From positions 105,712 to 134,829 of the forward strand of contig RQSC01000523.1 in NCBI GenBank assembly GCA_013416795.1: a DNA stretch of 29,118 nt, in the 5' to 3' direction. The position numbers and the translations under genes are program-made. Below are positions 6,677 through 27,007 of this stretch, one piece after another (position 1 is the first letter of the stretch; every line of letters begins with the position of its first letter). The stretch is from Prasinococcaceae sp. CCMP 1430. Lineage: Eukaryota > Plantae > Prasinodermophyta. The notes beneath the pieces were generated by a model. That model saw nothing but the letters and a program-made list of their open reading frames with translations, was not told the origin of the DNA and did not search any database.

Positions 6677-8605
6677 CTAGAACATGCCCGGACCCCGTGT
6701 CGGCGTCGCGGTGGGTAGCGGCGGCGGGAAGCAGCCGAGCGCGCAGCACTGCGTGCCCTGGATGGTGCCCGCGTCGAGGCACTTCACCCCCCCGGTGCCG
6801 TCGCCCTTGAGCGCTGGACGCTCGCCGTCCGGGCACTGCCCCGGCCACGATGACTCGATCCAGTAGTAGTCGTTGGGGTCGCACAACCCGTGGCCCGGCT
6901 CGAGCTCCGAGGCGTAGCCGAACTGCTCTCGGGTGCAGAGCGCCGCGCCCACCGACGCGCACATGGCCGCGGAGTTCACGTAGTTGGTGTTGGTGCACAC
7001 GCCCGGCAGCCAGCCGCCCGCGCGGGAGGTGCACACGCCGTCCGCGTTGTCCAGGGGGTCGGTCCAGTTCTTGGCCGCGTCGAAGATCTTCACCGACTCG
7101 GCGATCTCCTCGCAGCACTGCACGAAGCGCGTGGGCGCCGCCGTGGGCATTGCCGTGGGCGCTGCGGTGGGCGCTGGCGTGGGGCACGTCGCGGACGCGC
7201 AGCACGCGACGGCGCCGAGGAAGGCGTCGCGCGTGCACTCGAAGGTGCCCGAGGCCGGATTGTACGCGATGTGCTCCTTGTCCCCGCAGCGGCCGGTCTG
7301 CAGATTCCACTGCTCGCGCGTCCACAGCATCGCGTTGCTGAAGTCGCAGCCCGTGCCCTCGGTGGCGGGCAGCTCGGCCGCGCTGCACAGGTCGGCGTTG
7401 ACGGTCTGGCACATGGCTTGCGCGGTGTGGAAGGTGGTTGCCTTCACGCACTGGTCGGCGAACCAGCCGCCCTTGGTGGCGCCGCACACGCCGGGCACGC
7501 CGTTTTTGCCAGTCTCGCCCCAGCACTGGCCTCCGAGGACGGGATCGCACTCGCCGAGCCAGCGCTGCAGGTTGGGGCAGCAGCCGATCTCGGGGGGCAT
7601 GCCGGCCTGCATCTCCGTGGTCGGCGCCTTGGTGGGCGAGGCGGTCGGCGCTGTCGTAGGGGCGATCGGCCTGGGGACGATAGGATCGGTGAGCACGATG
7701 AAGGAGTCGAACTGGCCCAGCGCAGAGTTCGGGTCGCCGCCCGCCGCAAGCTGCAGGGCCGACTGGATGATCGCTTGCGTCGCAGGCGTGGTGCCCGGCG
7801 GGGCAAGGACGGTGTACGTGAGCTGGGTAGTTTCAATGCCTTCGTTGAGGAATGTTGAGCAGCTGAGATGCGAAGCGCGAGGTCAAAGTCGCGTGCGTTG
7901 GCGGAGCGACGGACCGGCCAACGAGTGAAAAGCGCGCGTGTGGGGGTGGGGGGAATGCGCGGAGGGCGATGGGGATGCGCGCGGCATGCAATGAGGTCAG
8001 CGCGCAATCTCGAGCACGTGGTCGTCAGGTCTCCGCTTTCGCGGCCTATCGCGCGCTTGGGCACGCATGCGCCCGTCATGAAGCATTCGCGGTCGGTCAC
8101 GAGCCTCCGCGCGCCACCAACGCAGCACCGCCAGTTGTGCATCTGCGAGGGCACACCACCAAACGCCTCCGCCGCCGCGCGCACTTTCACAGCCCCGCAC
8201 TCACCTCACGTCCACGAACGCAATGGGCGTGGGAGAGCCTTGAACGGCGTACACTGTGTTCTCGTAGATACTGAGGATCTGCAGCTCCAGGAGGGGGCAG
8301 CTCGGATTGACCTGCGCAGCGACCACGCTCGCGGGTCCATTCTGCTGCTGCTGCTGACCGGTGAACTCGTCCTTGGAGATGGGGACGATCGGCAGTGGGA
8401 GGGGCACCGCGCCTGGCGGTGCAGTGACATCCAGGGGCGGCCCAACGAGACCAGCGACGCGCGTCACGGACGCGCTGAACGCCACCGACATTGCCGCGGC
8501 CGTCGCTACCACGCTGGCGGCGCCCGCCACCCGCCGCATGGCGCCGCGCTCGGCGGCGCGCCCCCGCGCGCCCATGCCCATGGCGGCGGCGAAGGATTCC
8601 GCCAT
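6677..8605 (-). CDS. Putative secreted/cell-surface protein with two tandem Cys-rich domains and PT(A/T)-rich linkers; 2 exons (8605-8205, 7862-6677), 528 aa
   Basis: AG|GTGAGT donor at 8204 and TCTCAG acceptor at 7863, with a TTGAC branch, join the 8201-8605 ORF in frame to the 6677-7696 ORF. N-terminal hydrophobic stretch; two homologous 12-14-Cys domains separated by PTAAPT repeats. Confidence 0.75.
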
Positions 8606-8710
8606 CAGTATTCATATCTTTCCCCTTTCGGATACGCCCTCGCGTCCGCTCCCGCCCCGCGCGCGCCCGCGAGGCGACGCCGCCAATTCCCCGGCGAGCG
8701 GAGCTCCCGA

Positions 8711-8752
8711 GGCCGCGCGCGCGCGCGCGCGCGCGGCCGCGCGCGCGCGCGC
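8711..8752. repeat. (CG)n tracts forming a perfect 28-bp palindrome GGC(CG)11GCC, followed by a further 15-nt alternating CG tract
   Basis: Read directly: 8711-8738 is self-complementary; 8738-8752 alternates C/G. Confidence 0.9.
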
Positions 8753-8873
8753 TCGAATTCACCCCCCATCAAAACGCACGCGGGGCGCGCCGCGCCGCGG
8801 ACAGAGCCGTTACGACCCCTATCGGCATCCCGCCATCGCTATCGATGCGCGTAAATGCGACGCAATGTGGTGC

Positions 8874-8889
8874 GATATAATATTATATC
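8874..8889. promoter_or_regulatory. 16-bp perfect AT-rich palindrome GATATAATATTATATC in a divergent intergenic region
   Basis: Self-complementary; lies in a 44% GC island (61/140 at 8861-9000). Function is inferred only. Confidence 0.4.
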
Positions 8890-9233
8890 AATCAATGTCT
8901 GATGCGGCGCGATGCCATTTGATCCCCACCGAAAGCTTCATAAAAATCGCATCGTCTGGCAATGCCTGGTCACGACATTGATATGGTATTGTACAGTGTA
9001 CGTTTGCGCACAACACGGCTAGGCCTGTGTCGCGTCATCAGGTCAGGCAGCATCAGCAGGCGCCAATCCGTTGGAAGTCTATAGTGGACTACGAACTCGT
9101 GTCATTTGATGGCGTTCGGGGAGGGGTCAGGTTTCAGGCAGGCGGCAGCGCGCGCCCAACGGCTGGGCGTGGCCCCGCAACCCCACTGGCACACGCGACG
9201 TCAGTCGACGGTTGGGCGGAGGTGACGAGGTAA

Positions 9234-9779
9234 CAACGCCGCGCTGCCGGCGGGAGCGCGCGCGCGCCGCCTCGGGCGCGCCGCCGAGAGGCGCGGCGGT
9301 GCGGCGCGGTCGCCGCGGGCCTGGGGGTTGCGGCGGTGGTGGGGGGGGCGCTGCTGTGGTGGACGTCCTCGTACGAGGCGTCGTCCGCGGGCGTCCGCGC
9401 GGCGTTCGACGAGCGCGCGCGCGCCTACCGCTCGGTCTACGTCGAGCGCTTCGAGCGGACGCGCTGGCTGCTGCGCGTCGGTGAGGGCGGCGAGACGGAG
9501 CTCGATAAGGTGGAGGAAGACGAGGCTGACCGCTTTCTCCAGGGCAGCCTGCACTCGGGCGCGCGAGGGGGCGACGTGGACTCGGCCAGCGTGCGCTTCG
9601 CGACGGGCGACGCCGCGCTGCGGGGCGGCGCGGGGCGATGCTGGGCGCGCGTCAGTGCTGTGTGCTGCCCGCACGCCAAAAAGGTACCGCAGGGCAGGAC
9701 AGGCCTTTTGGAGGCACCGTGTGTGTGGTGGTGGTGGGCGCGTGAGAGAGGCGGCGCGCCCGGCCGCGCGTGCGCCAGC
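9234..9779 (+). other. Coding-like, ATG-less segment in frame with the downstream oxidase (TM helix followed by a charged helical region)
   Basis: Open frame from 9234. RRCGAVAAGLGVAAVVGGALLWW then TSSYEASSAGVRAAFDERARAYRSVYVERFER, with strong G/C-ending codons to about 9640. No in-frame ATG before 9780. Confidence 0.35.
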
Positions 9780-11457
9780 ATGTTGCCGCCTCCCAGCTCG
9801 GACGAGTTTGCGGACCTGCGGTCGGCGCTGAGCGGAGACGCCGCGCTGGTGGTGCGTCCCCCCGCCTCCGCCGCCGCCGATCAGCAGGCCGAGGCGTACG
9901 AGCGCGCCCTGTGGGGCGCCAAGTGGGATGTGGCGCAGCTGAAGCGCCGAAGCTCGGGCTGGTCGCGGGAGGCCAACGGGACCAACACATGGAACGTCGA
10001 CGGCTTGGAGGAGCGCATGCCGGCGGCCATCGCCTCGCCCGCGAGCGCGCGGGACGTCGCCGAGTGCGTGCTCTACGCCGCGGCCAGGCGCTCCGAGGGC
10101 CAAAGGCTGTGCGTGGCGGGCGGGCGCTTCTCGCAGCTCTCGCTCGCCGAGGGCGCGCTGTGCATCGACCTGTCGCGCATGCGAAGCGCTCGCTGTGACG
10201 CCACAACCGGCACCGTCGTCGCACAGGGTGGGTGTCTTGTGGGCGACGTGATGAGCGCGTGCCAGCCGCACGCGCTTGCGGTGCCGCTCGGCGCGCACCC
10301 AGGCACGGGCATCGGCGGGCTGGTGCTGCAGGGCGGGCACGGCTGGCTGGAACGAAGCGCCGGGCTCGCGGTGGATGCGCTGCTCTCGGCACAAGTCGTG
10401 CTCGCGTCGGGAGACATCATGCGCGCCAGTGCCGACGAGAACGCGGATCTGTTCTGGGCCATCCGAGGCGGCGGCGGCGGCTTCGGCGTCGTCACCGAGT
10501 TCGTCTTTCGGGCCGCGCCCGTCGGCGAGGCCGGTCAGGTACAGCGCATAACGAAGGTGTACGTCCCGCTCAAGGCCTTCTCGGCCCTCCGATTCCAGCC
10601 GTCGCGACTCGAATGCCTGCGCAACTTCCGCGACGCATGCATCGCGGTGGATGGCGTCGACGAGCTCGCAATGGAGGCGGTCGTACTCGTCGGGGGGCCG
10701 ACGATCGCGAGCATGGTGAGCTTCAGCAGCAGCCTCGCACGGGGCGAGGCCGCGCTCAAGGAGCACGGGCGGGCATTCCAAAAGCTACGGGCGGTCGCCA
10801 ACGCGCTCAAGCCTTGCTCGTATCACGACGGGCTCATGTACGACGTATTCAGCCCTTCGATGGAGGCGAACCTCCAGAGCAGGTATTACCGCACCGGCAG
10901 CCTGCACGAGGACCTGCCCGACGCAGCTCTGAAGGCCATCTCTGACGCCACCTCGGGCAAGCAGCCGTGCTCCAAGGGCACTCAAGTGCTCATCACGCTG
11001 CTGGGGGGCAAGGCCAAGCGGTGCGTCGTCGGGACGCGCGCGCCATGGCATCGCCCATCCCTCGAATCTCAATGGCGAGGGCGACGCTCCAGCCGCTGAA
11101 GGCACCCACTGACCGACGCCCGCCCGCGCGCGTGCGCTCACGACTCACTCGCTCACGTGCAGCGTTCCCGATCACGCCACGGCGTACGCGCACCGGCGTG
11201 CGATGTTCTGGGTGACCATCACGACGTACCTCCCGCCGCCCAAGGCCGGCAAGGGCAAGCGCACAGACGCCATCCGATGGGCAGAAGACCTGCGTGCCAA
11301 GCTCGCGCCGCACGCCATGCATGAAAGCACCAGCAGCGGCCCGCACTCCGGGCTGGCGCTGCCGCCACCACGTGGCCACCACGCGGAGAGGCTGCGGGAC
11401 TTGAAGGCGCGCCTGGACCCCGCGAACGTCTTCAGCTCGGTGCAGCCCATCGCGTGA
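9780..11457 (+). CDS. FAD-linked oxidoreductase, berberine-bridge-enzyme/VAO-like (FAD_binding_4 plus BBE C-terminus); 2 exons (9780-11020, 11163-11457), 511 aa
   Basis: PAAIASPASARDVAECV; GALCIDLSRM; VVAQGGCLVGDV; GIGGLVLQGGHGWL; DALLSAQVVLASG...ENADLFWAIRGGGGGFGVVTEF. The GTGCGT...GTGCAG intron (11021-11162) restores RVPDHATAYAHR. C-terminal RLRDLKARLDPANVF. Confidence 0.88.
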
Positions 11458-15955: not shown

Positions 15956-16778
15956 AGCGCAATTGCGTGCGCGCGAGCGAGGGAGAGTCAACCGCGGGCG
16001 CCCGCCCGCGCCCGCGCCAACAACGCCCGCGACCCCTCCCCCCCTTCTTCCCCACGCCGCCCCGCTCGCGCCCGCCTCGCGCAGCGCCGAAGCCAATCGC
16101 GGCCCTGACTGTCGAAATCTCGCTCCCAAACCCTTCGCCGCGCCACCCCGCCCCCACCCCTTCACCCCCCTCGCGCACGCTGTGGCGGGCGGCGGCGGCG
16201 GCGATGGCGCTCGCTCGCTCCCTCGCTCTCGCGCGGTCGTCGCGCGGGGGAACCGACCCCGCAAACCGCCGGTCGAAATGCGCAAAAATGCGCACAACGC
16301 GCGCCCATCCGCAATACGAATCACCATAGGTGCCTCCCAACAACACGAGCAAAAAACGCTCCCCAAATTTGCCAAGGCGTCGTTTGTGTTTGTTGTTTGC
16401 CGAATTCCGATCACTGACGTCGATCGCTGACGCCTAACGGCCGCATAGGAAGGGAGTGGGGCGCGCGGCGAAAACCTCGATACCAGTTTTTTGGGGGTTG
16501 GTTGGAGTTCGAGCCCGCGCGGGTGGTGCGGCGCGCAGGAGACAGCTGCCCGCGAGCTAGGGCTGGTGTGCCACACGCCGCGCGCGGGGAGGCGTGTGGG
16601 GGGGGAGGAGGAGGCGGTCGGGGGGCTTGCGAGGACGCGGTCGCGGTGCCGCCGCGTGGGGGCCGCGCGGGGTGACCCCCCCCACACACACACCACACAC
16701 ACAAGTGCGTGCGGCGCACGTTGTGGCGGCGGCGGCGGCGCGGGGCTCTCTCGCGCCCGGGCCGCAGCGGCGCGCGCG

Positions 16779-18920
16779 ATGGACGGCGGCGGCAGCGCCG
16801 TGCCCTCGGCGTCAGATGCCCGGAACGGCGCGCCCGCCGGCGCGGAAGGGCACGCGCCGGGATCGCATGCGCCGCCACCAACGGAGCTCGGACACATCCC
16901 TGGCGCCCAGCCAGATGACGCGACGCGCTTCGTGTCGTCGCTCAAGGCCTTCCTGCTCGAGACGCAGGGCGTGATTCTCTTCGGCACAGCCGGCTGGGAG
17001 CAGCCCTGCGTCGGCCCAGCGAGGGACGTGCTCAGCCTCACGCAGCTCTACCGGTTCGTCGCGCTGCGCGGCGGCGCTGGCGCGGCCGCACAGGCCACCT
17101 TCGATTGGCGGAGCATTGCGGCGCAACTCAACTTCCCGCCAGAGGCGGCACCGGCCATCAAGCTCACCTACACGCAATTCCTGTCGGCGTACATGAGGCG
17201 CTACCTCGCGCCTCTGCACATGGTAGCCGCGCCGGGCGCCGCCGGCCGTGCGCCCGGTGCCGCAGCTCCGAAGCGTGAGAGGAGCCAGGTCACGGGGAAG
17301 CGATCGTCGGCGACGGCCGGCCTGCCCGCCGTGCGCGTGCCAGACGGCGCTGCCGGGCCGAAAATGGAGAGTGGCGCCGCCGGTAACTCCAACAACGGGA
17401 CGAAGGAGCCGCCGACCGAGCTCGAGCTCGCGAAGATGCGCAAGCTCCTCGGGGATATGACGCCTTCGCTCGACCCATCGATTTACGCGTCGGCGGACGT
17501 CGAAACCGCGCAGGGGGGCATGGGCCTGCTGCAGTCGCTCGTGTGCGGCGTTGCTGCGGAGCGCGCGTGGGCGCTCAACGCACTCATGGCGGCGTCGAGC
17601 GCCAGGGAGGCCGGGCTCGCGCCGGAGCGCATGCCCTTGCTGCTTCGGGGGCTCGTGTCCGTGCTGAAGGCATGGCTTTCGAGGACTCACCCGTCGATGC
17701 CCCTCAAACTGCCGCGATGGCTGGTGGAGGGACTGCCAGAGCACTGCCCTCGACCCAAGCACGTGGACGAGGCTCTCGCAAACATCGCCGGTGCGCCAGA
17801 CGAGATCCTCGGGGAGCTTCGCAATTCGCGGCTGCTCGGCGATCCCTCGTTCTGGCCGGAGGCGTGCCATGCGCTCGCCGATGACCCTGACGGCCTGACG
17901 TCAGCGAGGCACGCCGCCGCCGCGGCCGTCATCCTCTCAAACTGTGCTCTGAGCAAGGAGGGCGCGACGTGCATGGTCAAGGATATCCAGACGCTGTCGC
18001 ATTTAGCCGCCTGCGTCGAGGTTGCGCGCTGGCGGTGCAGTGCGCCCGGCAGCACAGGCAGAGGGGCCGACGGCGGCGGCACCACCACAGGGGTGCCTGT
18101 GCCCGAGGAGGAGGACATATTCAGCGCGTGCGCGACGGCGCTTTGCAGGCTTGGGGGGCTGATTGATCTCGGCAGGCCAGACATGCTGCGCTGTGTGTCT
18201 GAGTCGGCAGACGCCATCAAGGAGGGCGTTGCGATCTCTTCGCGCGTCCTCGATGTGATGGTTCGGCAGTGTCTGGACGCCAGCGCTCCGCCGTCCTTGC
18301 AGGCGCAGGCGCTGCGCGCGCTCGCGCGGACGGCCACGCCCGACATGATCGACAGGGAGGCCGAGCTGGAGGTGGAGGCGGAGCCCCCCATTGATCGACA
18401 CGCGACTGGCGCGGCAGCAGCGTCAAAGGTGGCCGCTGAGGCCAGGCGGGCGGCCGCGCACGCGCTGAATCCTGGCATGGACGAGCCACTGGCGCGCATG
18501 TGCCAGAACAACAGCGAGGTCATGGTGACTCTCGCGCCGAGCTTGGTCAGTCGATCTGTCGAGCTTGCGCGATGGGCGCTCGCACAGCCAGGTGGCAGTG
18601 CTCAGGACGCCGCAGACGTGATCAGCGGCGTCGCGCAACTGCTCCGCGCGCTGTGCGATGTCGGTCCCTCAGGTAGGAAGGCAGTGGCTGGCTGCGCTGC
18701 TGCCGTGCGTTGCCTCGCGCAGCTGCTCGCCTCGCCGTTGTCAAGCGCGTACGCACGCCTCGACGCGGCGCACGCGCTCGATCGCGTGGCGGCATCGGGC
18801 GCCGCTCTCGCGGCGCTGCGGGCTGTGGAAGACGAGCTCGCGCAGGCTGCGGCCTATGCCAGTCCCGCGCTGGCGCACCCGCTGGGGCGCGTGCTGATCG
18901 CCGTAGCACATCCTCACTAA
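16779..18920 (+). CDS. ARID-domain plus ARM/BAF250-like chromatin-remodelling (SWI/SNF) subunit, 713 aa, apparently intronless
   Basis: ARID consensus FVSSLKAFL...LSLTQLYRFVALRGG...DWRSIAAQLNF...IKLTYTQFLSAYM (about 16915-17210). GLLQSLVCGVAAERAWALNALMAAS resembles the start of the BAF250/LFR ARM region. A helical repeat region follows. Confidence 0.75.
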   Translation: MDGGGSAVPSASDARNGAPAGAEGHAPGSHAPPPTELGHIPGAQPDDATRFVSSLKAFLLETQGVILFGTAGWEQPCVGPARDVLSLTQLYRFVALRGGAGAAAQATFDWRSIAAQLNFPPEAAPAIKLTYTQFLSAYMRRYLAPLHMVAAPGAAGRAPGAAAPKRERSQVTGKRSSATAGLPAVRVPDGAAGPKMESGAAGNSNNGTKEPPTELELAKMRKLLGDMTPSLDPSIYASADVETAQGGMGLLQSLVCGVAAERAWALNALMAASSAREAGLAPERMPLLLRGLVSVLKAWLSRTHPSMPLKLPRWLVEGLPEHCPRPKHVDEALANIAGAPDEILGELRNSRLLGDPSFWPEACHALADDPDGLTSARHAAAAAVILSNCALSKEGATCMVKDIQTLSHLAACVEVARWRCSAPGSTGRGADGGGTTTGVPVPEEEDIFSACATALCRLGGLIDLGRPDMLRCVSESADAIKEGVAISSRVLDVMVRQCLDASAPPSLQAQALRALARTATPDMIDREAELEVEAEPPIDRHATGAAAASKVAAEARRAAAHALNPGMDEPLARMCQNNSEVMVTLAPSLVSRSVELARWALAQPGGSAQDAADVISGVAQLLRALCDVGPSGRKAVAGCAAAVRCLAQLLASPLSSAYARLDAAHALDRVAASGAALAALRAVEDELAQAAAYASPALAHPLGRVLIAVAHPH

Positions 18921-18944: not shown

Positions 18945-18993
18945 GTTGGTTGCGTTTGTTGCCCTACCCCACTCAGCTGATGCTGGGCGCGGG

Positions 18994-21765
18994 CTATCGC
19001 TCACCGAGGTCGCCGGTGGCCACGACGGTCGCCGCGTCAGAGAGATGTTTGACGAAGCCACCTTGCTCCTTCACGGCCTTGAGCTGATCACCGACCAGTG
19101 GCTCGCGCTCAAGCTTCAAGCAGACGACGCTTATGTCATCGGGCTTGTGCTGCTCTCGGCGACGCAACGTTGCAACGTAGCTCAGCCGCCGGGCGGCGCG
19201 CGAGCACGACTTGGCTCTGCGCTGTCTCGCCATGACTTCGTGGTCTTCCAGCATATCCCAGAGCCCGTCAGACGCGACAGTCACCAACATGCGAGTCGTT
19301 GCGGGGGCGAGCGTGTTCAGGTCGAAGCGGGATATGTATGGCTTTGCGTTCACCGCGGGGTGTGCCTTCCCGTCGCCCAGCGAGCGGCTAACCGCCAGTC
19401 CCCCAGGCCATGCTCGCAGAGGCCCGACTTCCACACCCGACGAGCGCTCGCGCAGGCGTGACACCTTGGCGCCTCCCAACCGCAACCGCCTCACCTCTGA
19501 GGGACTGTCGTCAAGGCGGTGGTCCACAGTCAGCCTGAACGTGTGCTCGCGCCTTTGAAACAAATTGATGCCCAGCACCCCGCACGACATCGGCATCTCA
19601 ACTCCCCCTTCGGGCAACCCGATGACGCCGCGCGAGTCACCCACGTTGGCAGTGGTGATAATGCCATCGCGGATGACCATAGCAGTGGCAGTGCAGCCCG
19701 CGCGCGTCTGACTCTCCTTGGTCAGCGCATCTATCTCCGCCATTGCCTTCGACAGGGCCTTGGGGAGCGCCTCGCTCATTCCGCGGCGCTTGCGCAGCCG
19801 CGTCGACAGCGCCGACAGCAGTGCCCAGGGAAACCGCTCGCGTGCAAGCTCGGCCGCCTCGAACCCAGCATGGCCGTCGAACACGCATACCAGCGTGGCA
19901 TTGCCCAGTTCACCCGCGCGCCACTGCGAATCGGACATAGCGCCCTCGCCATTCCCCCCTCCGTCGGGTGACGGCAGCACAAGGACGCGGTCTTCTCCCT
20001 TCGCAGTGACCGTGGCCGCCTTCACCTCAACGTTCCAGTCCTTGCGCTCGTCCAGGAAGCGCACCCTCGTCCTGGAGGCACTAGTGCGCCGCTTGCCTTC
20101 GGGGACCACGCCGCACAGGCAGTGTTTCAGCCACTTCCACTGCGCGCGCATGACGACGTAGGCGTGCTCCAACTGGTGGGAGAGCTCATCGGCCATCGTC
20201 AGCGGGGCGCTCAGGAAGTCGTACAGCGGCTCGATCCCATTGAGGAGGTCCATGTCCACATTGGTGTACGACAGTGCTGCATCACCCGGCGTCCTGTCGC
20301 TCGCATCAGAACTTGCGCGGGCGACAGAGCCGTCGGGCACAGACGCATCGGGGCTCTCGCGCTCGGCCGAGGCCCTCGCGCGCTCGCCCTCCTTCGCCTT
20401 GCGCCGCTGCACGACACTTATCGACCGCAGGTTTTGGACGAACTTGAGCAACTCACCGCGATCAAACGGTCCTGAGTTCAGCACCGACTGGTCGACCCCA
20501 GGCAGGAACTCAAACTTGTTGTTGCTATCGGACCTCTCCGAGCTTCCGGAGGAAAATCCGGAGGAAAAGGACCCGCAGATCGAGTTCGAGGGAGAGTCCA
20601 CCATGGTTCGTAATCTTCGCCTCCTCAGAGACGCCTTGAGGGACGGCCACGCGAACAGGCTCGAGGTGCCGAGGAAGCTCATCGCACAGACGGTGACCAC
20701 CACTGCCAGTGCGTGCAAGAGCCGCATGCCCGCACCGCCCATCGCGTCGGCGGCCTCCTGCCCGTAGGTCAGCGAGACGAGGTGAGGCTGCGCGAACACC
20801 CCGCCCAGCAGCATGCCAACGAGGCCGCCAACAAGGTGTGAGGCAATGATGTCGAGTGCGTCGTCGATGCGCAGGTACGCGAGCCCGTACACCGAGGCCA
20901 CAAAACCGAGGCCGGCGACCGCCCCCACCGCCACAGACCCTCCCGAGGAAAGCACGGGGGCGCCGCACGCCACCGCCGCCGTGCCCGCGATGGCACCACG
21001 CACGCACGTCGATGCTGGCAACGCACCGCCATACCCTTTCAGCTTGCTCACGAGCACCGATCCCGCCGCTGCGGCCGCAGACCCGGCCGCCGCCGCAAGC
21101 ACCGTGCACAACAGTGTGCGCCCCAAGAAGTCGGGCATCGCTGCTGCCCACGGCGCCGCGCCGCACGCTGAGAGCGACAGTCCCCACATCGCCATCAAGC
21201 CGCCAATGCCGGAGAGCGCCTCGTCGTGTCCCTCGAAGGCACCGCTGAAGGGCTTGCCCGCCGCGTCACGCGTGCCACCGGTGATGGCGCTGGCCTTGAG
21301 GAGGCTCGCCGCGCCCGCGTTTGCCTTCTCGTCGAAACGTCTGCGTCCCTGCGAGTCCTTGCGCGGCCCGACGAAGACCGCGCACGCCAGCGCCGCGGCG
21401 CCGCTCACGATGTGCAGCGGGCCGCAGCCGGCGATGTCGAGCGCCGCCGAGCGCGCGCCGCTCTCCGGAGCGAAGAGCGCGCCCGGCGCCCACTCGAGCC
21501 GCATCGCGAGCGGGCTGAGCACCCCACCGACGAGCGTGCCGACCATCAGGACGTTCAAGGCCGAGAAGGCGCGCTCGGCCATGCCGGCCACCGCGAAGGT
21601 CGCCGCGAGGCCCGCGAGCGCCGCCACGTGCAGCCGCGCGACGCCGGCCTCGACGCCCATGTTTGCGCCGACGCCCGTCGCGGCCCCGGCGGCTGGATAC
21701 GTTTCGTGGCCGGCCACTCGCCACCCGAAGAGGCCGAACGCCGCGAGCGCCGCGGTCGTCGCCAT
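18994..21765 (-). CDS. Ammonium transporter (Amt/Mep/Rh)-like domain fused to a PP2C/PPM Ser/Thr phosphatase; single ORF, 923 aa from ATG 21765 (997 aa from the alternative ATG 21987)
   Basis: Amt motifs: AGMAER, LDIAGCGPLHIVSGAAAL, GPR, GAIAGTAAV, IDDALDIIASHLVGGLVGMLLGGVFA (about 21765-20640). PP2C motifs: KGEDR, VFDGHAG, GCTA, ANVGDSR, LTVDH, GGLAVSRSLGD, VASDGLWD, DDISVV (about 20030-19090). No stop codon between the two domains. Confidence 0.9.
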   Translation of the reverse strand: MATTAALAAFGLFGWRVAGHETYPAAGAATGVGANMGVEAGVARLHVAALAGLAATFAVAGMAERAFSALNVLMVGTLVGGVLSPLAMRLEWAPGALFAPESGARSAALDIAGCGPLHIVSGAAALACAVFVGPRKDSQGRRRFDEKANAGAASLLKASAITGGTRDAAGKPFSGAFEGHDEALSGIGGLMAMWGLSLSACGAAPWAAAMPDFLGRTLLCTVLAAAAGSAAAAAGSVLVSKLKGYGGALPASTCVRGAIAGTAAVACGAPVLSSGGSVAVGAVAGLGFVASVYGLAYLRIDDALDIIASHLVGGLVGMLLGGVFAQPHLVSLTYGQEAADAMGGAGMRLLHALAVVVTVCAMSFLGTSSLFAWPSLKASLRRRRLRTMVDSPSNSICGSFSSGFSSGSSERSDSNNKFEFLPGVDQSVLNSGPFDRGELLKFVQNLRSISVVQRRKAKEGERARASAERESPDASVPDGSVARASSDASDRTPGDAALSYTNVDMDLLNGIEPLYDFLSAPLTMADELSHQLEHAYVVMRAQWKWLKHCLCGVVPEGKRRTSASRTRVRFLDERKDWNVEVKAATVTAKGEDRVLVLPSPDGGGNGEGAMSDSQWRAGELGNATLVCVFDGHAGFEAAELARERFPWALLSALSTRLRKRRGMSEALPKALSKAMAEIDALTKESQTRAGCTATAMVIRDGIITTANVGDSRGVIGLPEGGVEMPMSCGVLGINLFQRREHTFRLTVDHRLDDSPSEVRRLRLGGAKVSRLRERSSGVEVGPLRAWPGGLAVSRSLGDGKAHPAVNAKPYISRFDLNTLAPATTRMLVTVASDGLWDMLEDHEVMARQRRAKSCSRAARRLSYVATLRRREQHKPDDISVVCLKLEREPLVGDQLKAVKEQGGFVKHLSDAATVVATGDLGER

Positions 21766-21987
21766 GATGAGGCGCACCGCCGCGGCGGCCGCGCCGCCGC
21801 GCTGGTTGGACGCCGCGCCTCCCGCGGCGGCCGACCTCGCGCGGCGGCGGCGGCGGCGGCGGCGAGGAGGAGGAGGAGGAGGCGCGCGCGAGCGGGGGCC
21901 CCGGCCGCGTTCCCCGATCTTTTCCGCCGCGCCCGCGGCGCTCGCCCCCTCGCGCGCCCTCCTTCGCCGCACCACGCACCGCGCCAT

Positions 21988-22692
21988 GCAAATACCCACG
22001 GGAGACCATATTTGACCTAAAAATGCATTGGGGCGCGGGGCGCCGCGCGGGGCGCCATCGCCGGCCGGGAGGGTGCTGCGTTCCTCCCGGCCGGCCCCCG
22101 GCCGGAGCCCTGCGAGGACATTCGGATTCGGATTCGCATGCATTCATTTGGGAGGAACAAAAAAGAGGTGCGCGGGCGCGGGCGGGGTGCGTTTTGCCCT
22201 CGCCGCGTTCCCCGAGCGCGCGCGTTCCCCGAGCGCGCGGATTTTTTTTGGGTTTGGGGGCGGGGCGGCCGCGGCGGCGGCCCACAACTTCAGNNNNNNN
22301 NNNNNNNNNNNNNNNNNNNNNNNNNNNNNNNNNNNNNNNNNNNNNNNNNNNNNNNNNNNNNNNNNNNNNNNNNNNNNNNNNNNNNNNNNNNNNNNNNNNN
22401 NNNNNNNNNNNNNNNNNNNNNNNNNNNNNNNNNNNNNNNNNNNNNNNNNNNNCGGCGCGCGCGCTCGGGGCGCGCTCGCGGCGTTCGGGCGCGGCGACGC
22501 GAGGGCGCGCATCGGCAGCCCCCCCCCCCCCATCCCCCCCCCTCCCTCTTGCAGCCACCGACCTCACCGTCTCGCTCGCGCCGAGCTGCACTCGCGGCCG
22601 CGGCAGCAGGGGGCGGGACGGGCTGGGGCGGAGAGGCGGGAGCAGACGGAGAGGCGCAGCTCGCGCGCGCGGGGCCTGCCATCGCCGTCGCG
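21988..22692. promoter_or_regulatory. Putative bidirectional promoter shared by the Amt-PP2C fusion and AMT1
   Basis: Divergent starts. Contains (ATTCGG)n at 22120-22136, a 17-bp tandem duplication at 22204-22237 and an N-gap. Confidence 0.5.
22294..22452. other. Assembly gap (159 N)
   Basis: Run of N. Confidence 1.
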
Positions 22693-24660
22693 ATGGTCGA
22701 GGGCGACACCGCCGCGCCCACCCTGGAGGAGATGCTGTTGCGGGTCGGCACGGCCGAGCGCGCGGTGGACGCGCTGTGGGTGACCTTTGCGACGGCCATG
22801 GTGCTCTTCATGCAGATGGGCTTCGCCGCGCTCGAAGTTGGCGCGGTGCGCACGAAGAACACGCGCACGATCTTGCTGAAGAACATCCTGGACTTTTCGG
22901 TGGGCACGCTGACGTTCTGGGCCCTCGGGTACGGCGTCGCGTACGGCGGCGGCAACAACCAGGCGGGCGGGAGGTCGGGCTATTTCCTTTCGGACACGCT
23001 CGTGCCCCAGGTCAGCGACGGCGAACCAATCACCGCCGACGACCTCCCCGCGGCGGCAGCCGAGGGCACCTTCGCGCACTTCACGCTGCTGCTGGCGTAC
23101 GCGTGCACGTCCACCACCATCGTGTCGGGCGCGCTCGCCGAGCGCGTGCGCCTGCGCGCCTTCCTCATCTTCACCGGGCTCAGCTGCTGGATCCTGTCGC
23201 CGCTGCCCATGCGCTGGACGTGGTACACGGGCGGCTGGCTCAACGCCAGCGCGTTGAGCACGACGTACACCGAGGGGCGCGCGCTCTTGGACGTGGGCGT
23301 GGTGGACTTCGCCGGCGCGGGCGTGGTCCACGCCGTGGGCGGCTTCTGCGCGCTGGTGGCCGCCAAGATGGCCGGCCCCAGGCTCGACGAGCGCGGCGTG
23401 AAGCGCTTCGAGAAGGGCGTGCGCGAGCACGACTTCGCGCCTCACGGCCCTGCGCTGTCCATCATCGGCGCGCTGTGCCTCCTCTTCTCGTGGTACGGAT
23501 TCAACGCGGGCTCCACCCTGGCCATCGTCGGCCAGGAGGACGTCGTCGCGTCGGTGCTCGTCACCACGACGCTCTCCGGCGCGAGCGCGATGATCGCCGG
23601 CAGCGCGATGCTGCTCGCCTCTTCGGGCTCCGCCAACGCGCTCGACCTGACCAACTGCCTGCTGGCGGGGCTCGTGGGCGTCACCGCCGGCTGCGCGGTG
23701 TTCGAGGCGTGGGCGAGCGTGGTGACGGGAATCCTGAGCAGCGCCGTGTACATCGGCGCCTCCAAGCTGCTCAAGCGCTTCAAAGTCGACGACCCGCTGG
23801 ACGCGAGCGCGCTGCATGGCGCATGCGGCAGCTTCGGCGTGGTCGCCGTGGGGCTCTTCGCCTCTTCGGACCTGATCGAGCAGGTGTACGGCCCGGGCAC
23901 CGGCGAGCACTACGGTCTGCTGCTGGGCGGCGGCTGGCGGCGCTTCGGCGCGCAGACTGTCGGCGTGGTGGTGTACGCCGCGTGGAGCCTCGCCTTCTCG
24001 GTGCTGCTCTTCTACGCCCTGAAGTACTCGGACCGCGCCTTCGAGTTGGGCAAGCGGATGGTCACCGGGAAGCCCTGCGAGGAGTCCGTGCCCAACGAGA
24101 GCGCCGAGGACCGCGAGCGCCGCGTGGGCAACGGCCTGCGCGTGAGCAGGGAGGTCGAGATGAGCGGCATCGACGTGTCGCACCACGCGGGGCTGCCCTA
24201 CCCGCCCTACCTGGCGCCCTTCATCGACAGCGTTAATATCGTGCGCGAGCTGCAGCTGGCGTCGCTCGAGCAGTCGGACCCGGTGCCCGCACCCGCGCAC
24301 GACGGCCCAGGGGGCGCCACCAGCAGCCCGGCCTCGTCCCCGGGCGCGCCCCGTGCGGACGACGGCAGCTTCCACGAGTTCAACCTGCTGCTGCGTCCGC
24401 GCGTCAACGACCTCAAGGACGACACCGTGCACGGGGCCAGCTCCGTCGACGAGATGCTGGGCGATGCGATCGACCCCGCCGAGGTCGCGGGCGGGACGCC
24501 GCACGCGGTCGACGAGGACGGCGTGCGCTTGCAGGGCGTCGCGGGCGGCGGGGACGGGGACGGGGGCGAGGCGGCCGAGGGGGGCGATGAGACGGGCGAG
24601 GACGGGGACGGGACGGGCGAGACTGGGAGGAAGCCCGAGGAAGCCGCAGCAGCATCCTAG
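22693..24660 (+). CDS. AMT1: AMT1-type ammonium transporter, 655 aa, apparently intronless
   Basis: FMQMGFAALEVGAVRTKN...LKNILD; IVSGALAER; VDFAGAGVVH; WYGFNAGST; LLAGLVGVTAGC; VDDPLDASALHGACG; C-terminal LRVSREVEMSGIDVSHHAG; long acidic tail. Confidence 0.95.
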   Translation: MVEGDTAAPTLEEMLLRVGTAERAVDALWVTFATAMVLFMQMGFAALEVGAVRTKNTRTILLKNILDFSVGTLTFWALGYGVAYGGGNNQAGGRSGYFLSDTLVPQVSDGEPITADDLPAAAAEGTFAHFTLLLAYACTSTTIVSGALAERVRLRAFLIFTGLSCWILSPLPMRWTWYTGGWLNASALSTTYTEGRALLDVGVVDFAGAGVVHAVGGFCALVAAKMAGPRLDERGVKRFEKGVREHDFAPHGPALSIIGALCLLFSWYGFNAGSTLAIVGQEDVVASVLVTTTLSGASAMIAGSAMLLASSGSANALDLTNCLLAGLVGVTAGCAVFEAWASVVTGILSSAVYIGASKLLKRFKVDDPLDASALHGACGSFGVVAVGLFASSDLIEQVYGPGTGEHYGLLLGGGWRRFGAQTVGVVVYAAWSLAFSVLLFYALKYSDRAFELGKRMVTGKPCEESVPNESAEDRERRVGNGLRVSREVEMSGIDVSHHAGLPYPPYLAPFIDSVNIVRELQLASLEQSDPVPAPAHDGPGGATSSPASSPGAPRADDGSFHEFNLLLRPRVNDLKDDTVHGASSVDEMLGDAIDPAEVAGGTPHAVDEDGVRLQGVAGGGDGDGGEAAEGGDETGEDGDGTGETGRKPEEAAAAS

Positions 24661-26219
24661 CTGGGGAGAGCGTTCGCAGCGCGAGTAAGCGTGGTCCTTT
24701 GATTACACCCTCTGGCACGCACGCCGGGCCGCGCGGCGCCCGCAGTCGCCGCCACCCACGCGACGGCGGCGGAGGCGCCCCGCGTCACTGGCCTACATCG
24801 GCGAGGACGAGGGAGGCGAGACGGCCGACGCGTCGTTCTTCGCGGTGGTGGCAGCCGGCTGGGACGAGCGCCCCCGCGCGGCTGCCCCTCCGGCAGGTCG
24901 GCGCGCGCGACGCGCGGCACGGCCTCGCACGCGCGCAGCGCCCTGCGCGCCTCGCCGAAGCCCGGCCTCTTCCTGCCCAGCGCGTCGCTCACGTCGGGCG
25001 TGATGCCCGTGGCGTCGATGTCCACGCCCGAGGGCGTGACGTACTTGCCGACGGTGAGCACGACGCCCGACGCGTCGGCGAGCTCGTACACCGACTGGAT
25101 GAGCCCCTTGCCGTACGTGCGGCTCCCCACGAGCGCCGCGCGGCAGTTGTCGTGCAGCGCGCCGGCGACGATCTCGGACGCGCTGGCCGTGCGCCCGTTG
25201 ACGAGCACCATCAGCGGCAGGCTGGTGGCCGGCGCGTCGAACGTCACCACCTGGCGGCCGGCGGTGCCGTCCGCGCGCCCCTCCTGCTTGACGATGGTGG
25301 AGCCCTCCTCCAGGAAGAGGCGCGCCACCTCCACGCCCGCCGACACCAGGCCGCCCGGGTTGTCGCGCAGGTCGAGCACGAAGCCCTCGGCGCCCTGCTC
25401 CTCGAGCGACTGCACGGCCGCGCGCAGGTCGCGCTGCGCGCGGCTGTTGAACTCGCGCAGGCGCAGGTAGCCGACCGTCCGCACCTCGTCGTCGCCGCCG
25501 CCGCCGCCGCCGAGGCCGCCGAGCGACGCGAGCAGCCCGCCGCTGTCGCGCTCCAGCCGCGCCTCCACGGGGCTCGCCGGCCCCTCCGCGGTGCGCGTCA
25601 TGGCGTACTCGCGCTCGCGGGCCGCGCCGGCGCCCTGCGGCGCGCCCTCCTCGCCGCCCTCGGCGGCGGCCTTGCGCACCTTGAGCACGAGCGGCGCGCC
25701 CACGTTGCCCACCATGAGCGTGCTCGCGTCGAAGGGCGACATGCCGCGCACGCTCTGGCCGTCGACCTCCAGCAGCACGTCGCCCTGCTCCACGCCCGCC
25801 CGGGCGGCCTCGCCCTCGAGGATGAGGCCCAGCACGACGAGCTCGCCGGGCGCGTCGCCCTCGCCGATGTTGAGCCCCACGCCGGTGATGTCGTACTTGG
25901 TGAGCGCGGTGAACTGCGCGGGCGTGACGAAGCGCGTGAACTGGTCGTCGAGCTGCGCGAGCATCGCGCGCACGGCCGCGTACGTCTCGCGCCTCGACGT
26001 GTACGGCGCGCCGCGCATGGTCCGCTCCTTGACGCCCGCCCAGAACTCGGGCGTGTACCGCTGCCCGCGGGCGTCGAGGAAGTGCTCGTCCACCACCGAC
26101 CACGCCTCCTCGATGACCGCGTCGCCGTCGAACGGCGGCGCGTCCGCCTCGGCGGCGCCGCCGGGGCCCGCCAGCAGGTCGCCCACGGAGAACGCGACCG
26201 GCGGCAGCGCGGGCCGGCG
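24657..26219 (-). CDS. CTPA: Carboxyl-terminal-processing peptidase (S41A, CtpA/CTPA1-like, PDZ plus peptidase); 5' end lies in the gap; true stop may be 24793
   Basis: VIEEAWSVV; LDDQFTRF; KYDITGVGLNIG; GYLRLREFN; VLDLRDNPGGLV; VLVNGRTASASEIVAGALHDNCRA; RTYGKGLIQSVYEL. The catalytic Ser/Lys dyad is intact. Confidence 0.9.
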   Translation of the reverse strand, partial: RRPALPPVAFSVGDLLAGPGGAAEADAPPFDGDAVIEEAWSVVDEHFLDARGQRYTPEFWAGVKERTMRGAPYTSRRETYAAVRAMLAQLDDQFTRFVTPAQFTALTKYDITGVGLNIGEGDAPGELVVLGLILEGEAARAGVEQGDVLLEVDGQSVRGMSPFDASTLMVGNVGAPLVLKVRKAAAEGGEEGAPQGAGAAREREYAMTRTAEGPASPVEARLERDSGGLLASLGGLGGGGGGDDEVRTVGYLRLREFNSRAQRDLRAAVQSLEEQGAEGFVLDLRDNPGGLVSAGVEVARLFLEEGSTIVKQEGRADGTAGRQVVTFDAPATSLPLMVLVNGRTASASEIVAGALHDNCRAALVGSRTYGKGLIQSVYELADASGVVLTVGKYVTPSGVDIDATGITPDVSDALGRKRPGFGEARRALRACEAVPRVARADLPEGQPRGGARPSRLPPPRRTTRRPSRLPRPRRCRPVTRGASAAVAWVAATAGAARPGVRARGCNQRTTLTRAANALPS

Positions 26220-27007
26220 NNNNNNNNNNNNNNNNNNNNNNNNNNNNNNNNNNNNNNNNNNNNNNNNNNNNNNNNNNNNNNNNNNNNNNNNNNNNNNNNN
26301 NNNNNNNNNNNNNNNNNNNNNNNNNNNNNNNNNNNNNNNNNNNNNNNNNNNNNNNNNNNNNNNNNNNNNNNNNNNNNNNNNNNNNNNNNNNNNNNNNNNN
26401 NNNNNNNNNNNNNNNNNNNNNNNNNNNNNNNNNNNNNNNNNNNNNNNNNNNNNNNNNNNNNNNNNNNNNNNNNNNNNNNNNNNNNNNNNNNNNNNNNNNN
26501 NNNNNNNNNNNNNNNNNNNNNNNNNNNNNNNNNNNNNNNNNNNNNNNNNNNNNNNNNNNNNNNNNNNNNNNNNNNNNNNNNNNNNNNNNNNNNNNNNNNN
26601 NNNNNNNNNNNNNNNNNNNNNNNNNNNNNNNNNNNNNNNNNNNNNNNNNNNNNNNNNNNNNNNNNNNNNNNNNNNNNNNNNNNNNNNNNNNNNNNNNNNN
26701 NNNNNNNNNNNNNNNNNNNNNNNNNNNNNNNNNNNNNNNNNNNNNNNNNNNNNNNNNNNNNNNNNNNNNNNNNNNNNNNNNNNNNNNNNNNNNNNNNNNN
26801 NNNNNNNNNNNNNNNNNNNNNNNNNNNNNNNNNNNNNNNNNNNNNNNNNNNNNNNNNNNNNNNNNNNNNNNNNNNNNNNNNNNNNNNNNNNNNNNNNNNN
26901 NNNNNNNNNNNNNNNNNNNNNNNNNNNNNNNNNNNNNNNNNNNNNNNNNNNNNNNNNNNNNNNNNNNNNNNNNNNNNNNNNNNNNNNNNNNNNNNNNNNN
27001 NNNNNNN
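26220..27007. other. Assembly gap (788 N)
   Basis: Run of N; hides the 5' ends of CtpA and probably of the ankyrin gene. Confidence 1.

Follow-up and report, generated by a model that had tools for sequence, protein, structure and literature searches.

What is an ammonium transporter fold for, once it has been joined to a phosphatase and the residues that make it a transporter have been rewritten? This question is raised by a gene in a 29,118-nucleotide stretch of Prasinococcaceae sp. CCMP 1430 (assembly GCA_013416795.1, contig RQSC01000523.1, positions 105,712 to 134,829 of the forward strand), referred to here as the window, whose DNA is eukaryotic with a G+C content of ~70% and 3 runs of N. 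The gene encodes an Amt/Mep/Rh-like membrane domain followed by a PP2C phosphatase domain. An earlier reading, made from the sequence alone, described the membrane domain as selectively decayed and its first helix and C-terminal tail as absent. The comparisons described below point to a domain that has been remodelled rather than abandoned, and a tentative role for it can be proposed in the control of the phosphatase.

The membrane domain of the Amt-PP2C fusion

The Amt-PP2C open reading frame (ORF) is uninterrupted over 990 codons and corresponds to PRCOL_00004094-RA of Prasinoderma coloniale (P0003; EukProt EP00793_Prasinoderma_coloniale_P005620), with 945 of 946 residues identical from residue 46 onward, which identifies the organism as the green picoalga P. 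coloniale. The protein is 990/991 residues long, and 991-residue versions of it are known from Tara metagenomes. In the numbering of the full protein, the codon of residue n is found at window position 21969-3n, a rule valid for residues 45-469. The parts of the gene, including its transmembrane (TM) helices, are as follows.

18994-22143, minus strand: Amt-PP2C ORF, with Pfam Ammonium_transp in the first half and PP2C in the second
20632..21834, minus strand: the part of the Amt/Mep/Rh-like membrane domain that is present in the window, comprising residues 45-445 from the end of TM1 to TM11
19930..20631, minus strand: vestigial C-terminal regulatory region and linker, with predicted helices of low confidence
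19090..19929, minus strand: PP2C phosphatase domain, residues 681-960 (Pfam PF00481, E 1.9e-28)

The membrane domain matches the PF00909 (Amt/Mep/Rh) profile with an E-value of 3.2e-26 and 92 bits (cut-off 23.2), and its sequence matches in the PDB are Ks-Amt5, Mep2, Sd-Amt1 and Af-Amt1, Ks-Amt5 being the top match by both sequence and fold. An AlphaFold2 model of residues 1-462, built with the native N terminus, has 11 TM helices (predicted local distance difference test, pLDDT, 71; predicted template modelling score, pTM, 0.75). Foldseek gives this fold a target-normalised TM-score of ~0.6-0.77 over ~440 columns against the best Amts (Ks-Amt5, Sd-Amt1, Af-Amt1 and AmtB). The full-length model, with a pLDDT of 54, is too poor for domain packing. 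The phosphatase half carries the catalytic and metal-binding acidic motifs of PP2C (GED, DGH, GDSR, DGLWD and DD), its PDB matches are plant PP2Cs, and GED, DGH, GDS, DG..D and DD are invariant columns across 8 fusion sequences. No HAMP domain was detected in the fusion. Marine metatranscriptome contigs from 3 runs cover 18987-21683 piecewise at ~98-100% identity, with DNA carry-over possible.

E. coli AmtB from MG1655 was aligned with the fused domain, with related sequences and with the canonical Amt encoded next door, and the codon positions of key residues were checked by translation. Residues below are given in AmtB numbering, followed in brackets by the fusion residue and its codon.

21616..21636, minus strand: TM3 segment RLHVAAL, with His in place of F103 and Leu in place of F107, the outer Phe gate
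21490..21531, minus strand: TM4 segment VGGVLSPLAMRLEW, ending in the kept W148 equivalent (W159, 21492-21490)
21412..21438, minus strand: DIAGCGPLH, which keeps D160 (D177, 21438-21436) and H168 (H185, 21414-21412), the first twin His
21334..21369, minus strand: cytoplasmic loop 5 motif GPRKDSQGRRRF (GPRxDxxGxRRF)
21157..21186, minus strand: TM6 segment WGLSLSACGA, aligned against I-G-W-F-G-F-N-A-G-S
20836..20865, minus strand: DDALDIIASH, which keeps the DD motif (20865-20860) and H318 (H377, 20838-20836), the second twin His

The residues that the sequence-only reading listed as kept (D160, H168, H318, the DD motif and W148) are all present, at exactly the coordinates it gave. The twin His and D160 of a conducting Amt are therefore in place in the fusion, and together with W148 they are kept in all 3 of the copies regarded as decayed. 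The replacements it listed also stand: F103H, F107L, F215S, N216A and S219A are borne out by alignment. An ungapped alignment of TM6, counted from the conserved His that precedes the helix, additionally gives W212L, whereas one MAFFT run puts the TM6 Trp at W212 by means of a one-residue gap. F215, N216 and S219 are lost both ways, so the gapped alignment does not restore the gate, and the paralogous fusion described below has no Trp in the W212 region of TM6. In place of the Phe gate (F107 and F215), Leu and Ser are found in the fusion and its orthologue; the paralogue likewise carries Leu in place of F107 and lacks the Phe of F215. F215 is reportedly essential for conduction by AmtB, a result said to come from Javelle and colleagues in 2008. 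At the outer recruitment site W148 is kept and S219 is Ala. F107, W212, F215, N216 and S219, which serve canonical Amts in the recruitment, gating and deprotonation of ammonium, have given way to another set of residues that is conserved in its turn, while D160, the twin His, the DD motif and W148 belong to the fold core. The His of TM3 at F103 is shared, like the Leu at F107, by orthologue and paralogue, but it is a weak marker, as the canonical neighbour has Leu at this position. With the Phe gate, the S219 site and most of the tail lost, the earlier view that this is not a canonical transporter is supported. The cytoplasmic face has fared differently in part. In loop 5 the G, R, G, R and F of the motif are invariant across fused and canonical Amts, and the Arg of loop 3 is likewise invariant. 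Canonical residues are found at 14/23 positions of the cytoplasmic loops versus 48/121 in the rest of the domain, which is a trend only (p 0.07).

Selection on the domain and the fate of its two ends

Whether these replacements reflect decay can be judged from variation within and between species. Within the population, 5 near-identical sequences (the window and four Tara scaffolds) were compared. The Amt domain has 13 synonymous and 6 nonsynonymous segregating sites, giving a ratio of nonsynonymous to synonymous polymorphism (pN/pS) of 0.18 (p 3e-4 versus neutrality), which excludes neutral evolution of the domain. The corresponding values are 0.23 for the PP2C domain and 0.37 for the linker. 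Among 4 contigs of a sister clade, 3 sites vary in the Amt domain and all are synonymous. The fusion of this clade (P0002) is 51% identical overall to that of the window and is its positional orthologue, because the gene downstream of it is 42% identical to the window's downstream gene; the Amt domains of the two orthologues are 55% identical versus 42% for that neighbouring gene. Between the clades, the ratio of nonsynonymous to synonymous divergence (dN/dS) is 0.44 for Amt and 0.25 for PP2C, with synonymous divergence (dS) saturated at 1.0-1.8. Polymorphism counts were therefore relied on instead.

Between the orthologues, the best-conserved 15-residue stretches coincide with elements of the former vestibule and gate: TM4 up to W148 (14/15), the rewritten TM6 (13/15), a stretch running from the last part of TM1 to loop 1 (12/15) and TM3 (11/15). 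The substituted segments of TM3, TM4 and TM6 are thus the best-conserved parts of the domain, and the "decay" of the gate proposed earlier is not borne out. On the evidence of these sequences, the vestibule and gate are better described as remodelled under constraint than as decaying. The same reading had argued that the gene is not a pseudogene, and here it holds up, given the pN/pS of 0.18, the syntenic orthologue in a sister species and the metatranscriptome coverage. The view that the locus is a decaying pseudogene, or else an artefact of annotation or assembly, can draw on a window copy without a start codon or the start of TM1, and it is very improbable in the face of 4 intact metagenome scaffolds, a P. 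coloniale protein model that has the N terminus, and an open 990-codon ORF that is under selection and covered by transcripts.

The missing start of the gene has its own explanation.

21833..21835, minus strand: junction where the window lacks 340 nucleotides (nt) comprising the 5' untranslated region, the authentic ATG and codons 1-44, in which TM1 begins

Tara scaffold L001, which matches the window at 99.6% identity over 5.1 kb, was found by blastn to carry 340 nt absent from the window. The segment recurs in three scaffolds from other samples (L011, L012 and L013), which remain collinear with the window on either side of it. The official P. coloniale model P0003, which is that of the strain itself, also includes the 44 N-terminal residues, which tblastn found nowhere in the 29-kb window. 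The ATG at 21765 from which the domain was previously read is Met68, and the second half of TM1 lies upstream of it, in the window. The absence of TM1 is thus not upheld, being due to the 340-nt gap and the choice of start codon. In the model, TM1 is predicted to exist with a degenerate motif: AMAAAGM..AAAAGGAASNQ aligns with FMQMGF..LEVGAVRTKN of the neighbour, in place of FMQxGF. An upstream exon had been named as a possible source of TM1. The helix is indeed restored, by contiguous coding sequence and not by an exon; the latter was rejected on the grounds that coding is contiguous in the scaffolds, that no acceptor-like boundary is found at the junction and that the tblastn search was negative.

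A Logan contig of the likely source DNA run ends at 21828, no long near-exact contig lies over 21829-21906 and no RNA contig spans it. The conclusion on the 340 nt rests on the four Tara scaffolds and the P. coloniale protein model, and the Logan reads neither confirm nor refute the junction. The promoter shared by the two genes contains a (CCT)n(GCC)n microsatellite at window 21840-21905. In both clades, every metagenome contig (L001-L005, L007-L009 and L011-L013) stops no more than a few hundred bases 5' of the fusion gene, and the intergenic region between the fusion and the neighbouring Amt is never assembled through. As all of these contigs break at the (CCT)n(GCC)n promoter, the region is hard to assemble. 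The missing 340 nt are probably an error of the window copy at this GC-rich, low-complexity promoter. Care must be taken with gene models and sequence-only calls at other GC-rich promoters of this genome, which need to be checked against metagenome contigs.

At the other end of the domain, TM11 is present and the regulatory tail is reduced. The LRV..E..G.D..H motif is intact in the canonical neighbour (GLRVSREVEMSGIDVSHH), whereas the fusion has the vestige LRTMVDSPS and its orthologue ENLGSISH. The C-terminal trans-activating region is represented in the fused domain only by this alignable vestige. The earlier claim that the tail is absent is right in that the motif is largely gone, and wrong in that the tail is a remnant behind a complete TM11 rather than cut off. 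In other fusion lineages the motif is intact (P0026 and P0028) or partly kept (P0022). A helix motif found just behind the tail in the canonical neighbours, YPPYLxPFIDSxN..REL, can still be recognised in the linker of the fusion as GPFDRGELLKFVQNLRS. One further linker motif is invariant between the orthologues.

20200-20247, minus strand: linker motif LLNGIEPLYDFLSAPL, 16/16 identical between orthologues

A motif related to LLNGIEPLYDFLSAPL is also present in the paralogue.

The probable partner transporter and other fusions

The genes around the fusion include a canonical member of its own family.

22693..24660, plus strand: canonical AMT1-type ammonium transporter (Pfam E 6e-83), head-to-head with the fusion and divergent from it
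24660-26219, minus strand: peptidase S41 with PDZ, a C-terminal processing protease (Pfam E 1.6e-50)
16734-18920, plus strand (L001 3373-5559): convergent downstream gene with a weak ARID/BRIGHT match (E 1.3e-5)

The protease gene is interrupted by a run of 788 N (26220-27007) and continues beyond it. The ARID/BRIGHT-like gene is the one that is syntenic in the sister species. The neighbouring Amt is a probable functional partner of the fusion. It belongs to the N1/N2 'receptor-type' class of AMT1. Among solved structures it comes closest to Sd-Amt1 and Ks-Amt5 (bit scores of 148 and 143, versus 89 for AmtB), its C-terminal regulatory motif is intact, and its tail has a Ser at the position equivalent to T460 (GIDVSHH). 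It also has a long acidic C-terminal extension.

Ks-Amt5 and Sd-Amt1 are receptors that sense ammonium at the N1/N2 sites, for which QX6EX15NX2D(F/T)X54-60TX2(S/T) has been proposed as a signature, and both retain the selectivity filter, the Phe gate and the His pair (PMC5764959, PMC11152129). A regular-expression search found neither this signature nor its first half in the fusions P0001, P0002, P0021, P0022 and P0028. The first half (QX6EX15NX2DF in the window's neighbour) is found in both canonical neighbours, that of the window and that of the paralogous fusion on scaffold L010, and the whole signature is found in the latter. The signature occurs, in its first half or in full, in the canonical partners and not in the fusions searched, so the receptor-type site sits in the partner rather than in the fused module. 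Compared with a sensor Amt, the fusion has the fused cytoplasmic transducer and lacks the N1/N2 signature and the full set of pore motifs.

The pairing of a fusion with a canonical Amt is found at a second locus.

L010 4524-9980: paralogous locus on a Tara scaffold, with a canonical Amt (601 residues, minus strand) head-to-head with an Amt-PP2C fusion (1003 residues, 6969-9980)

The official P. coloniale model PRCOL_00000477 matches the fusion at this locus (P0021) at 99% identity. Identity is 55% between the two canonical partners and 41% between the two fused domains, while a fused domain and either partner share ~25%. Judged by these identities, the fusion and its canonical Amt look to have been duplicated as a unit. 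A recent local inverted duplication of the neighbour was considered as the origin of the fused domain and rejected, since the domain is 25% identical to the neighbour and no closer to it than to other lineages. The model PRCOL_00000477-RA (P0170) starts at Met40 of the metagenome ORF, and so lacks the start of TM1, and extends ~285 residues beyond its C terminus; it is probably mis-modelled at both ends.

A wider view of such fusions can be obtained from a profile search of 1.8 billion representative proteins, in which 5 clusters carry both Amt and PP2C: this clade, the paralogue P0021 and three further lineages. All four of the other clusters have also lost some conduction residues. For example, P0022 keeps WYGF in TM6 and continues with V-W-G-G (WYGFVWGG), P0028 has GGHGLNSF in TM6, and P0026 has Cys at H318. 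These three lineages (P0022/P0184, P0026/P0187 and P0028; loci L014 and L015) are marine protist fusions with less altered Amt domains. On this comparison of sequences, the Prasinoderma copies appear as the extreme end of a graded series of Amt-domain change. Two of the three further lineages are also represented by MMETSP culture transcripts, and these two fusions are therefore transcribed as single mRNAs. A full-text search of a limited collection of papers found no description of a natural Amt-PP2C fusion.

Functional readings and known systems

Several lines of evidence bear on what the module does: the rewritten ammonium sites, the invariant cytoplasmic loops, the intact PP2C motifs, purifying selection, the pairing at two loci and the literature on plant AMT1. 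The roles offered by the earlier reading, namely a sensor, a channel for another substrate or a trimerisation scaffold, are all still candidates. In AtAMT1;1 the basic loops L1, L3 and L5 form the docking surface of the regulatory tail, a contact that is loosened by the phosphomimetic change T460D (PMC13745463). The Arabidopsis PP2C ABI1 binds AMT1;1 and AMT1;2 and affects their C-terminal phosphorylation state (PMC9516733). Because of these observations we favour, tentatively and at a little short of an even chance, a reading in which the Amt module is a non-conducting, receptor-like or regulatory module for the phosphatase, which would probably act on a Ser near the C terminus of the partner AMT1. 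The module would no longer conduct ammonium by the canonical mechanism; it would hold PP2C at the cytoplasmic face of the membrane and modulate its activity. The likeliest substrate would be the AMT1 partner, which in this reading is co-expressed and carries a phosphate on the tail Ser that corresponds to T460, and by dephosphorylating this tail the fusion would act as an on-switch for ammonium uptake. The trigger could be a ligand in the remodelled vestibule or contact with the AMT1 trimer.

A number of points weigh against this proposal. The assignment of the substrate is a guess from gene adjacency and plant analogy. With the twin His, D160 and W148 kept, some conduction or ammonium binding may persist, and a gate built of the small residues Ser, Ala and Gly might in fact make for a wider pore. 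In the sensor Amts known so far every canonical motif is intact, and sensing with the residue set found here is without precedent. In addition, the retention of the cytoplasmic loops is only a trend, and the structure models are moderate (membrane domain) or poor (full length). A bolder form of the proposal, which is possible but unlikely, is that a pseudo-transporter subunit or receptor brings PP2C onto the AMT1 trimer and removes an inhibitory tail phosphate, making the fusion a 'Rosetta stone' on-switch duplicated together with its transporter. If so, the Arabidopsis AMT1-PP2C (ABI1) link would be ancient in the green lineage and would also be present in other marine protists.

The alternative that survives best needs no ligand sensing. 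Here the module would be a pseudo-subunit or scaffold that enters heterotrimers with the neighbouring AMT1, takes the AMT1 tail on its basic loops and sets PP2C at the phosphosite. AMT1 heterotrimers and trans-regulation are known in plants. Inter-subunit regulation of AMT1 has been described (PMC13745463), and the RhAG-RhCE complex (7UZQ), which is listed among the Foldseek structures, provides a precedent for such a subunit. The loss of the substrate-site residues, of the N1/N2 signature and of the protein's own tail is in line with a scaffold, as are the invariant loop 5 motif and loop 3 Arg and the duplication of the gene pair as a unit. We nevertheless consider this rather unlikely: an identity of only ~25% to the neighbour is low for co-assembly, and the helices that are best conserved are those of the vestibule and gate and not the interface helices TM7 and TM9.

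The same pattern of conservation bears on an improbable alternative, that the Amt fold is a passive anchor kept only to insert and trimerise PP2C, its His, Asp and Trp being structural leftovers. D160 and the two His residues also contribute structurally, the helices are very rich in Ala and Gly, and between species the dN/dS of the Amt domain exceeds that of PP2C (0.44 versus 0.25), although dS is saturated. Former gate segments retaining 14/15 (TM4) and 13/15 (TM6) residues are, however, conserved too well for a mere anchor in proteins that are 51% identical overall; eleven helices would not be needed, and pairing with an AMT1 gene at two loci would not be expected. It is also quite improbable that the module is a remodelled pore, conducting ammonium or another small solute or ion less selectively, with PP2C merely an attached regulator. 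The kept twin His, D160 and W148, purifying selection on the domain and the replacement of gate residues by small or polar ones are all consistent with a pore. Against it, the fusion has lost F215, W212, S219 and F107 together with the TM1 motif and the trans-activating tail, the Cys at H318 in another lineage indicates that the His pair can be lost in the fused family, and a canonical transporter is encoded next door.

How phosphorylation regulates AMT1 transporters is a topic of active research on plant nutrition. If the PP2C of the fusion does act on the neighbouring transporter, as the favoured reading of a receptor-like module proposes, the locus would offer a simple, genetically linked system in which to study how ammonium uptake is switched back on, and would separate the parts of the Amt fold required for signalling from those required for transport. 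This can be set beside several systems in which a transporter fold has been put to other uses. RhCE and RhD, for instance, belong to the Amt/Rh family but do not transport, and they assemble with RhAG into heterotrimers. Like the fusion, they have lost conduction residues and yet are maintained as structural or regulatory subunits; unlike it, they have no fused enzyme and belong to the Rh branch in the animal lineage, and heterotrimers in the alga are only hypothetical. The yeast transporter-like nutrient sensors (the Mep2 transceptor, Ssy1 and Snf3/Rgt2) also re-use a transporter fold for signalling. Their signals pass through separate partner proteins and their substrate site is as a rule intact, whereas in the algal fusion the enzyme is covalently attached and the substrate site remodelled.

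Fusions of an Amt to a signalling enzyme have been characterised in two bacterial receptors only, both with every transport motif. Ks-Amt5 of 'Ca. Kuenenia stuttgartiensis' (PDB 6EU6; PMC5764959) is an Amt fused to a histidine kinase, with an extra high-affinity site; the algal domain has no Phe gate, S219 or N1/N2 signature, and its output is a phosphatase in a eukaryote. Sd-Amt1 of Shewanella denitrificans (Amt-HAMP-diguanylate cyclase; PDB 8QJ3/8QJ4; PMC11152129) is, like the fusion, bimodular, but it has all canonical motifs and the N1/N2 signature, which the Amt-PP2C fusions checked do not have. Amts with fused modules occur in all kingdoms, including outside the N1/N2 cluster, and await study (PMC11152129). 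The present case differs from them in its eukaryotic host, its phosphatase output, its ammonium sites, which are rewritten and yet under selection, and its AMT1-type neighbour. A further parallel is the plant system of AMT1, CIPK23 and ABI1 at Thr460 (PMC9516733; PMC13745463), with which the locus shares an AMT1, a C-terminal phosphosite, a PP2C and the basic loops L3 and L5. In plants the PP2C is a separate soluble protein, while in the alga it is covalently joined to an Amt-fold module.

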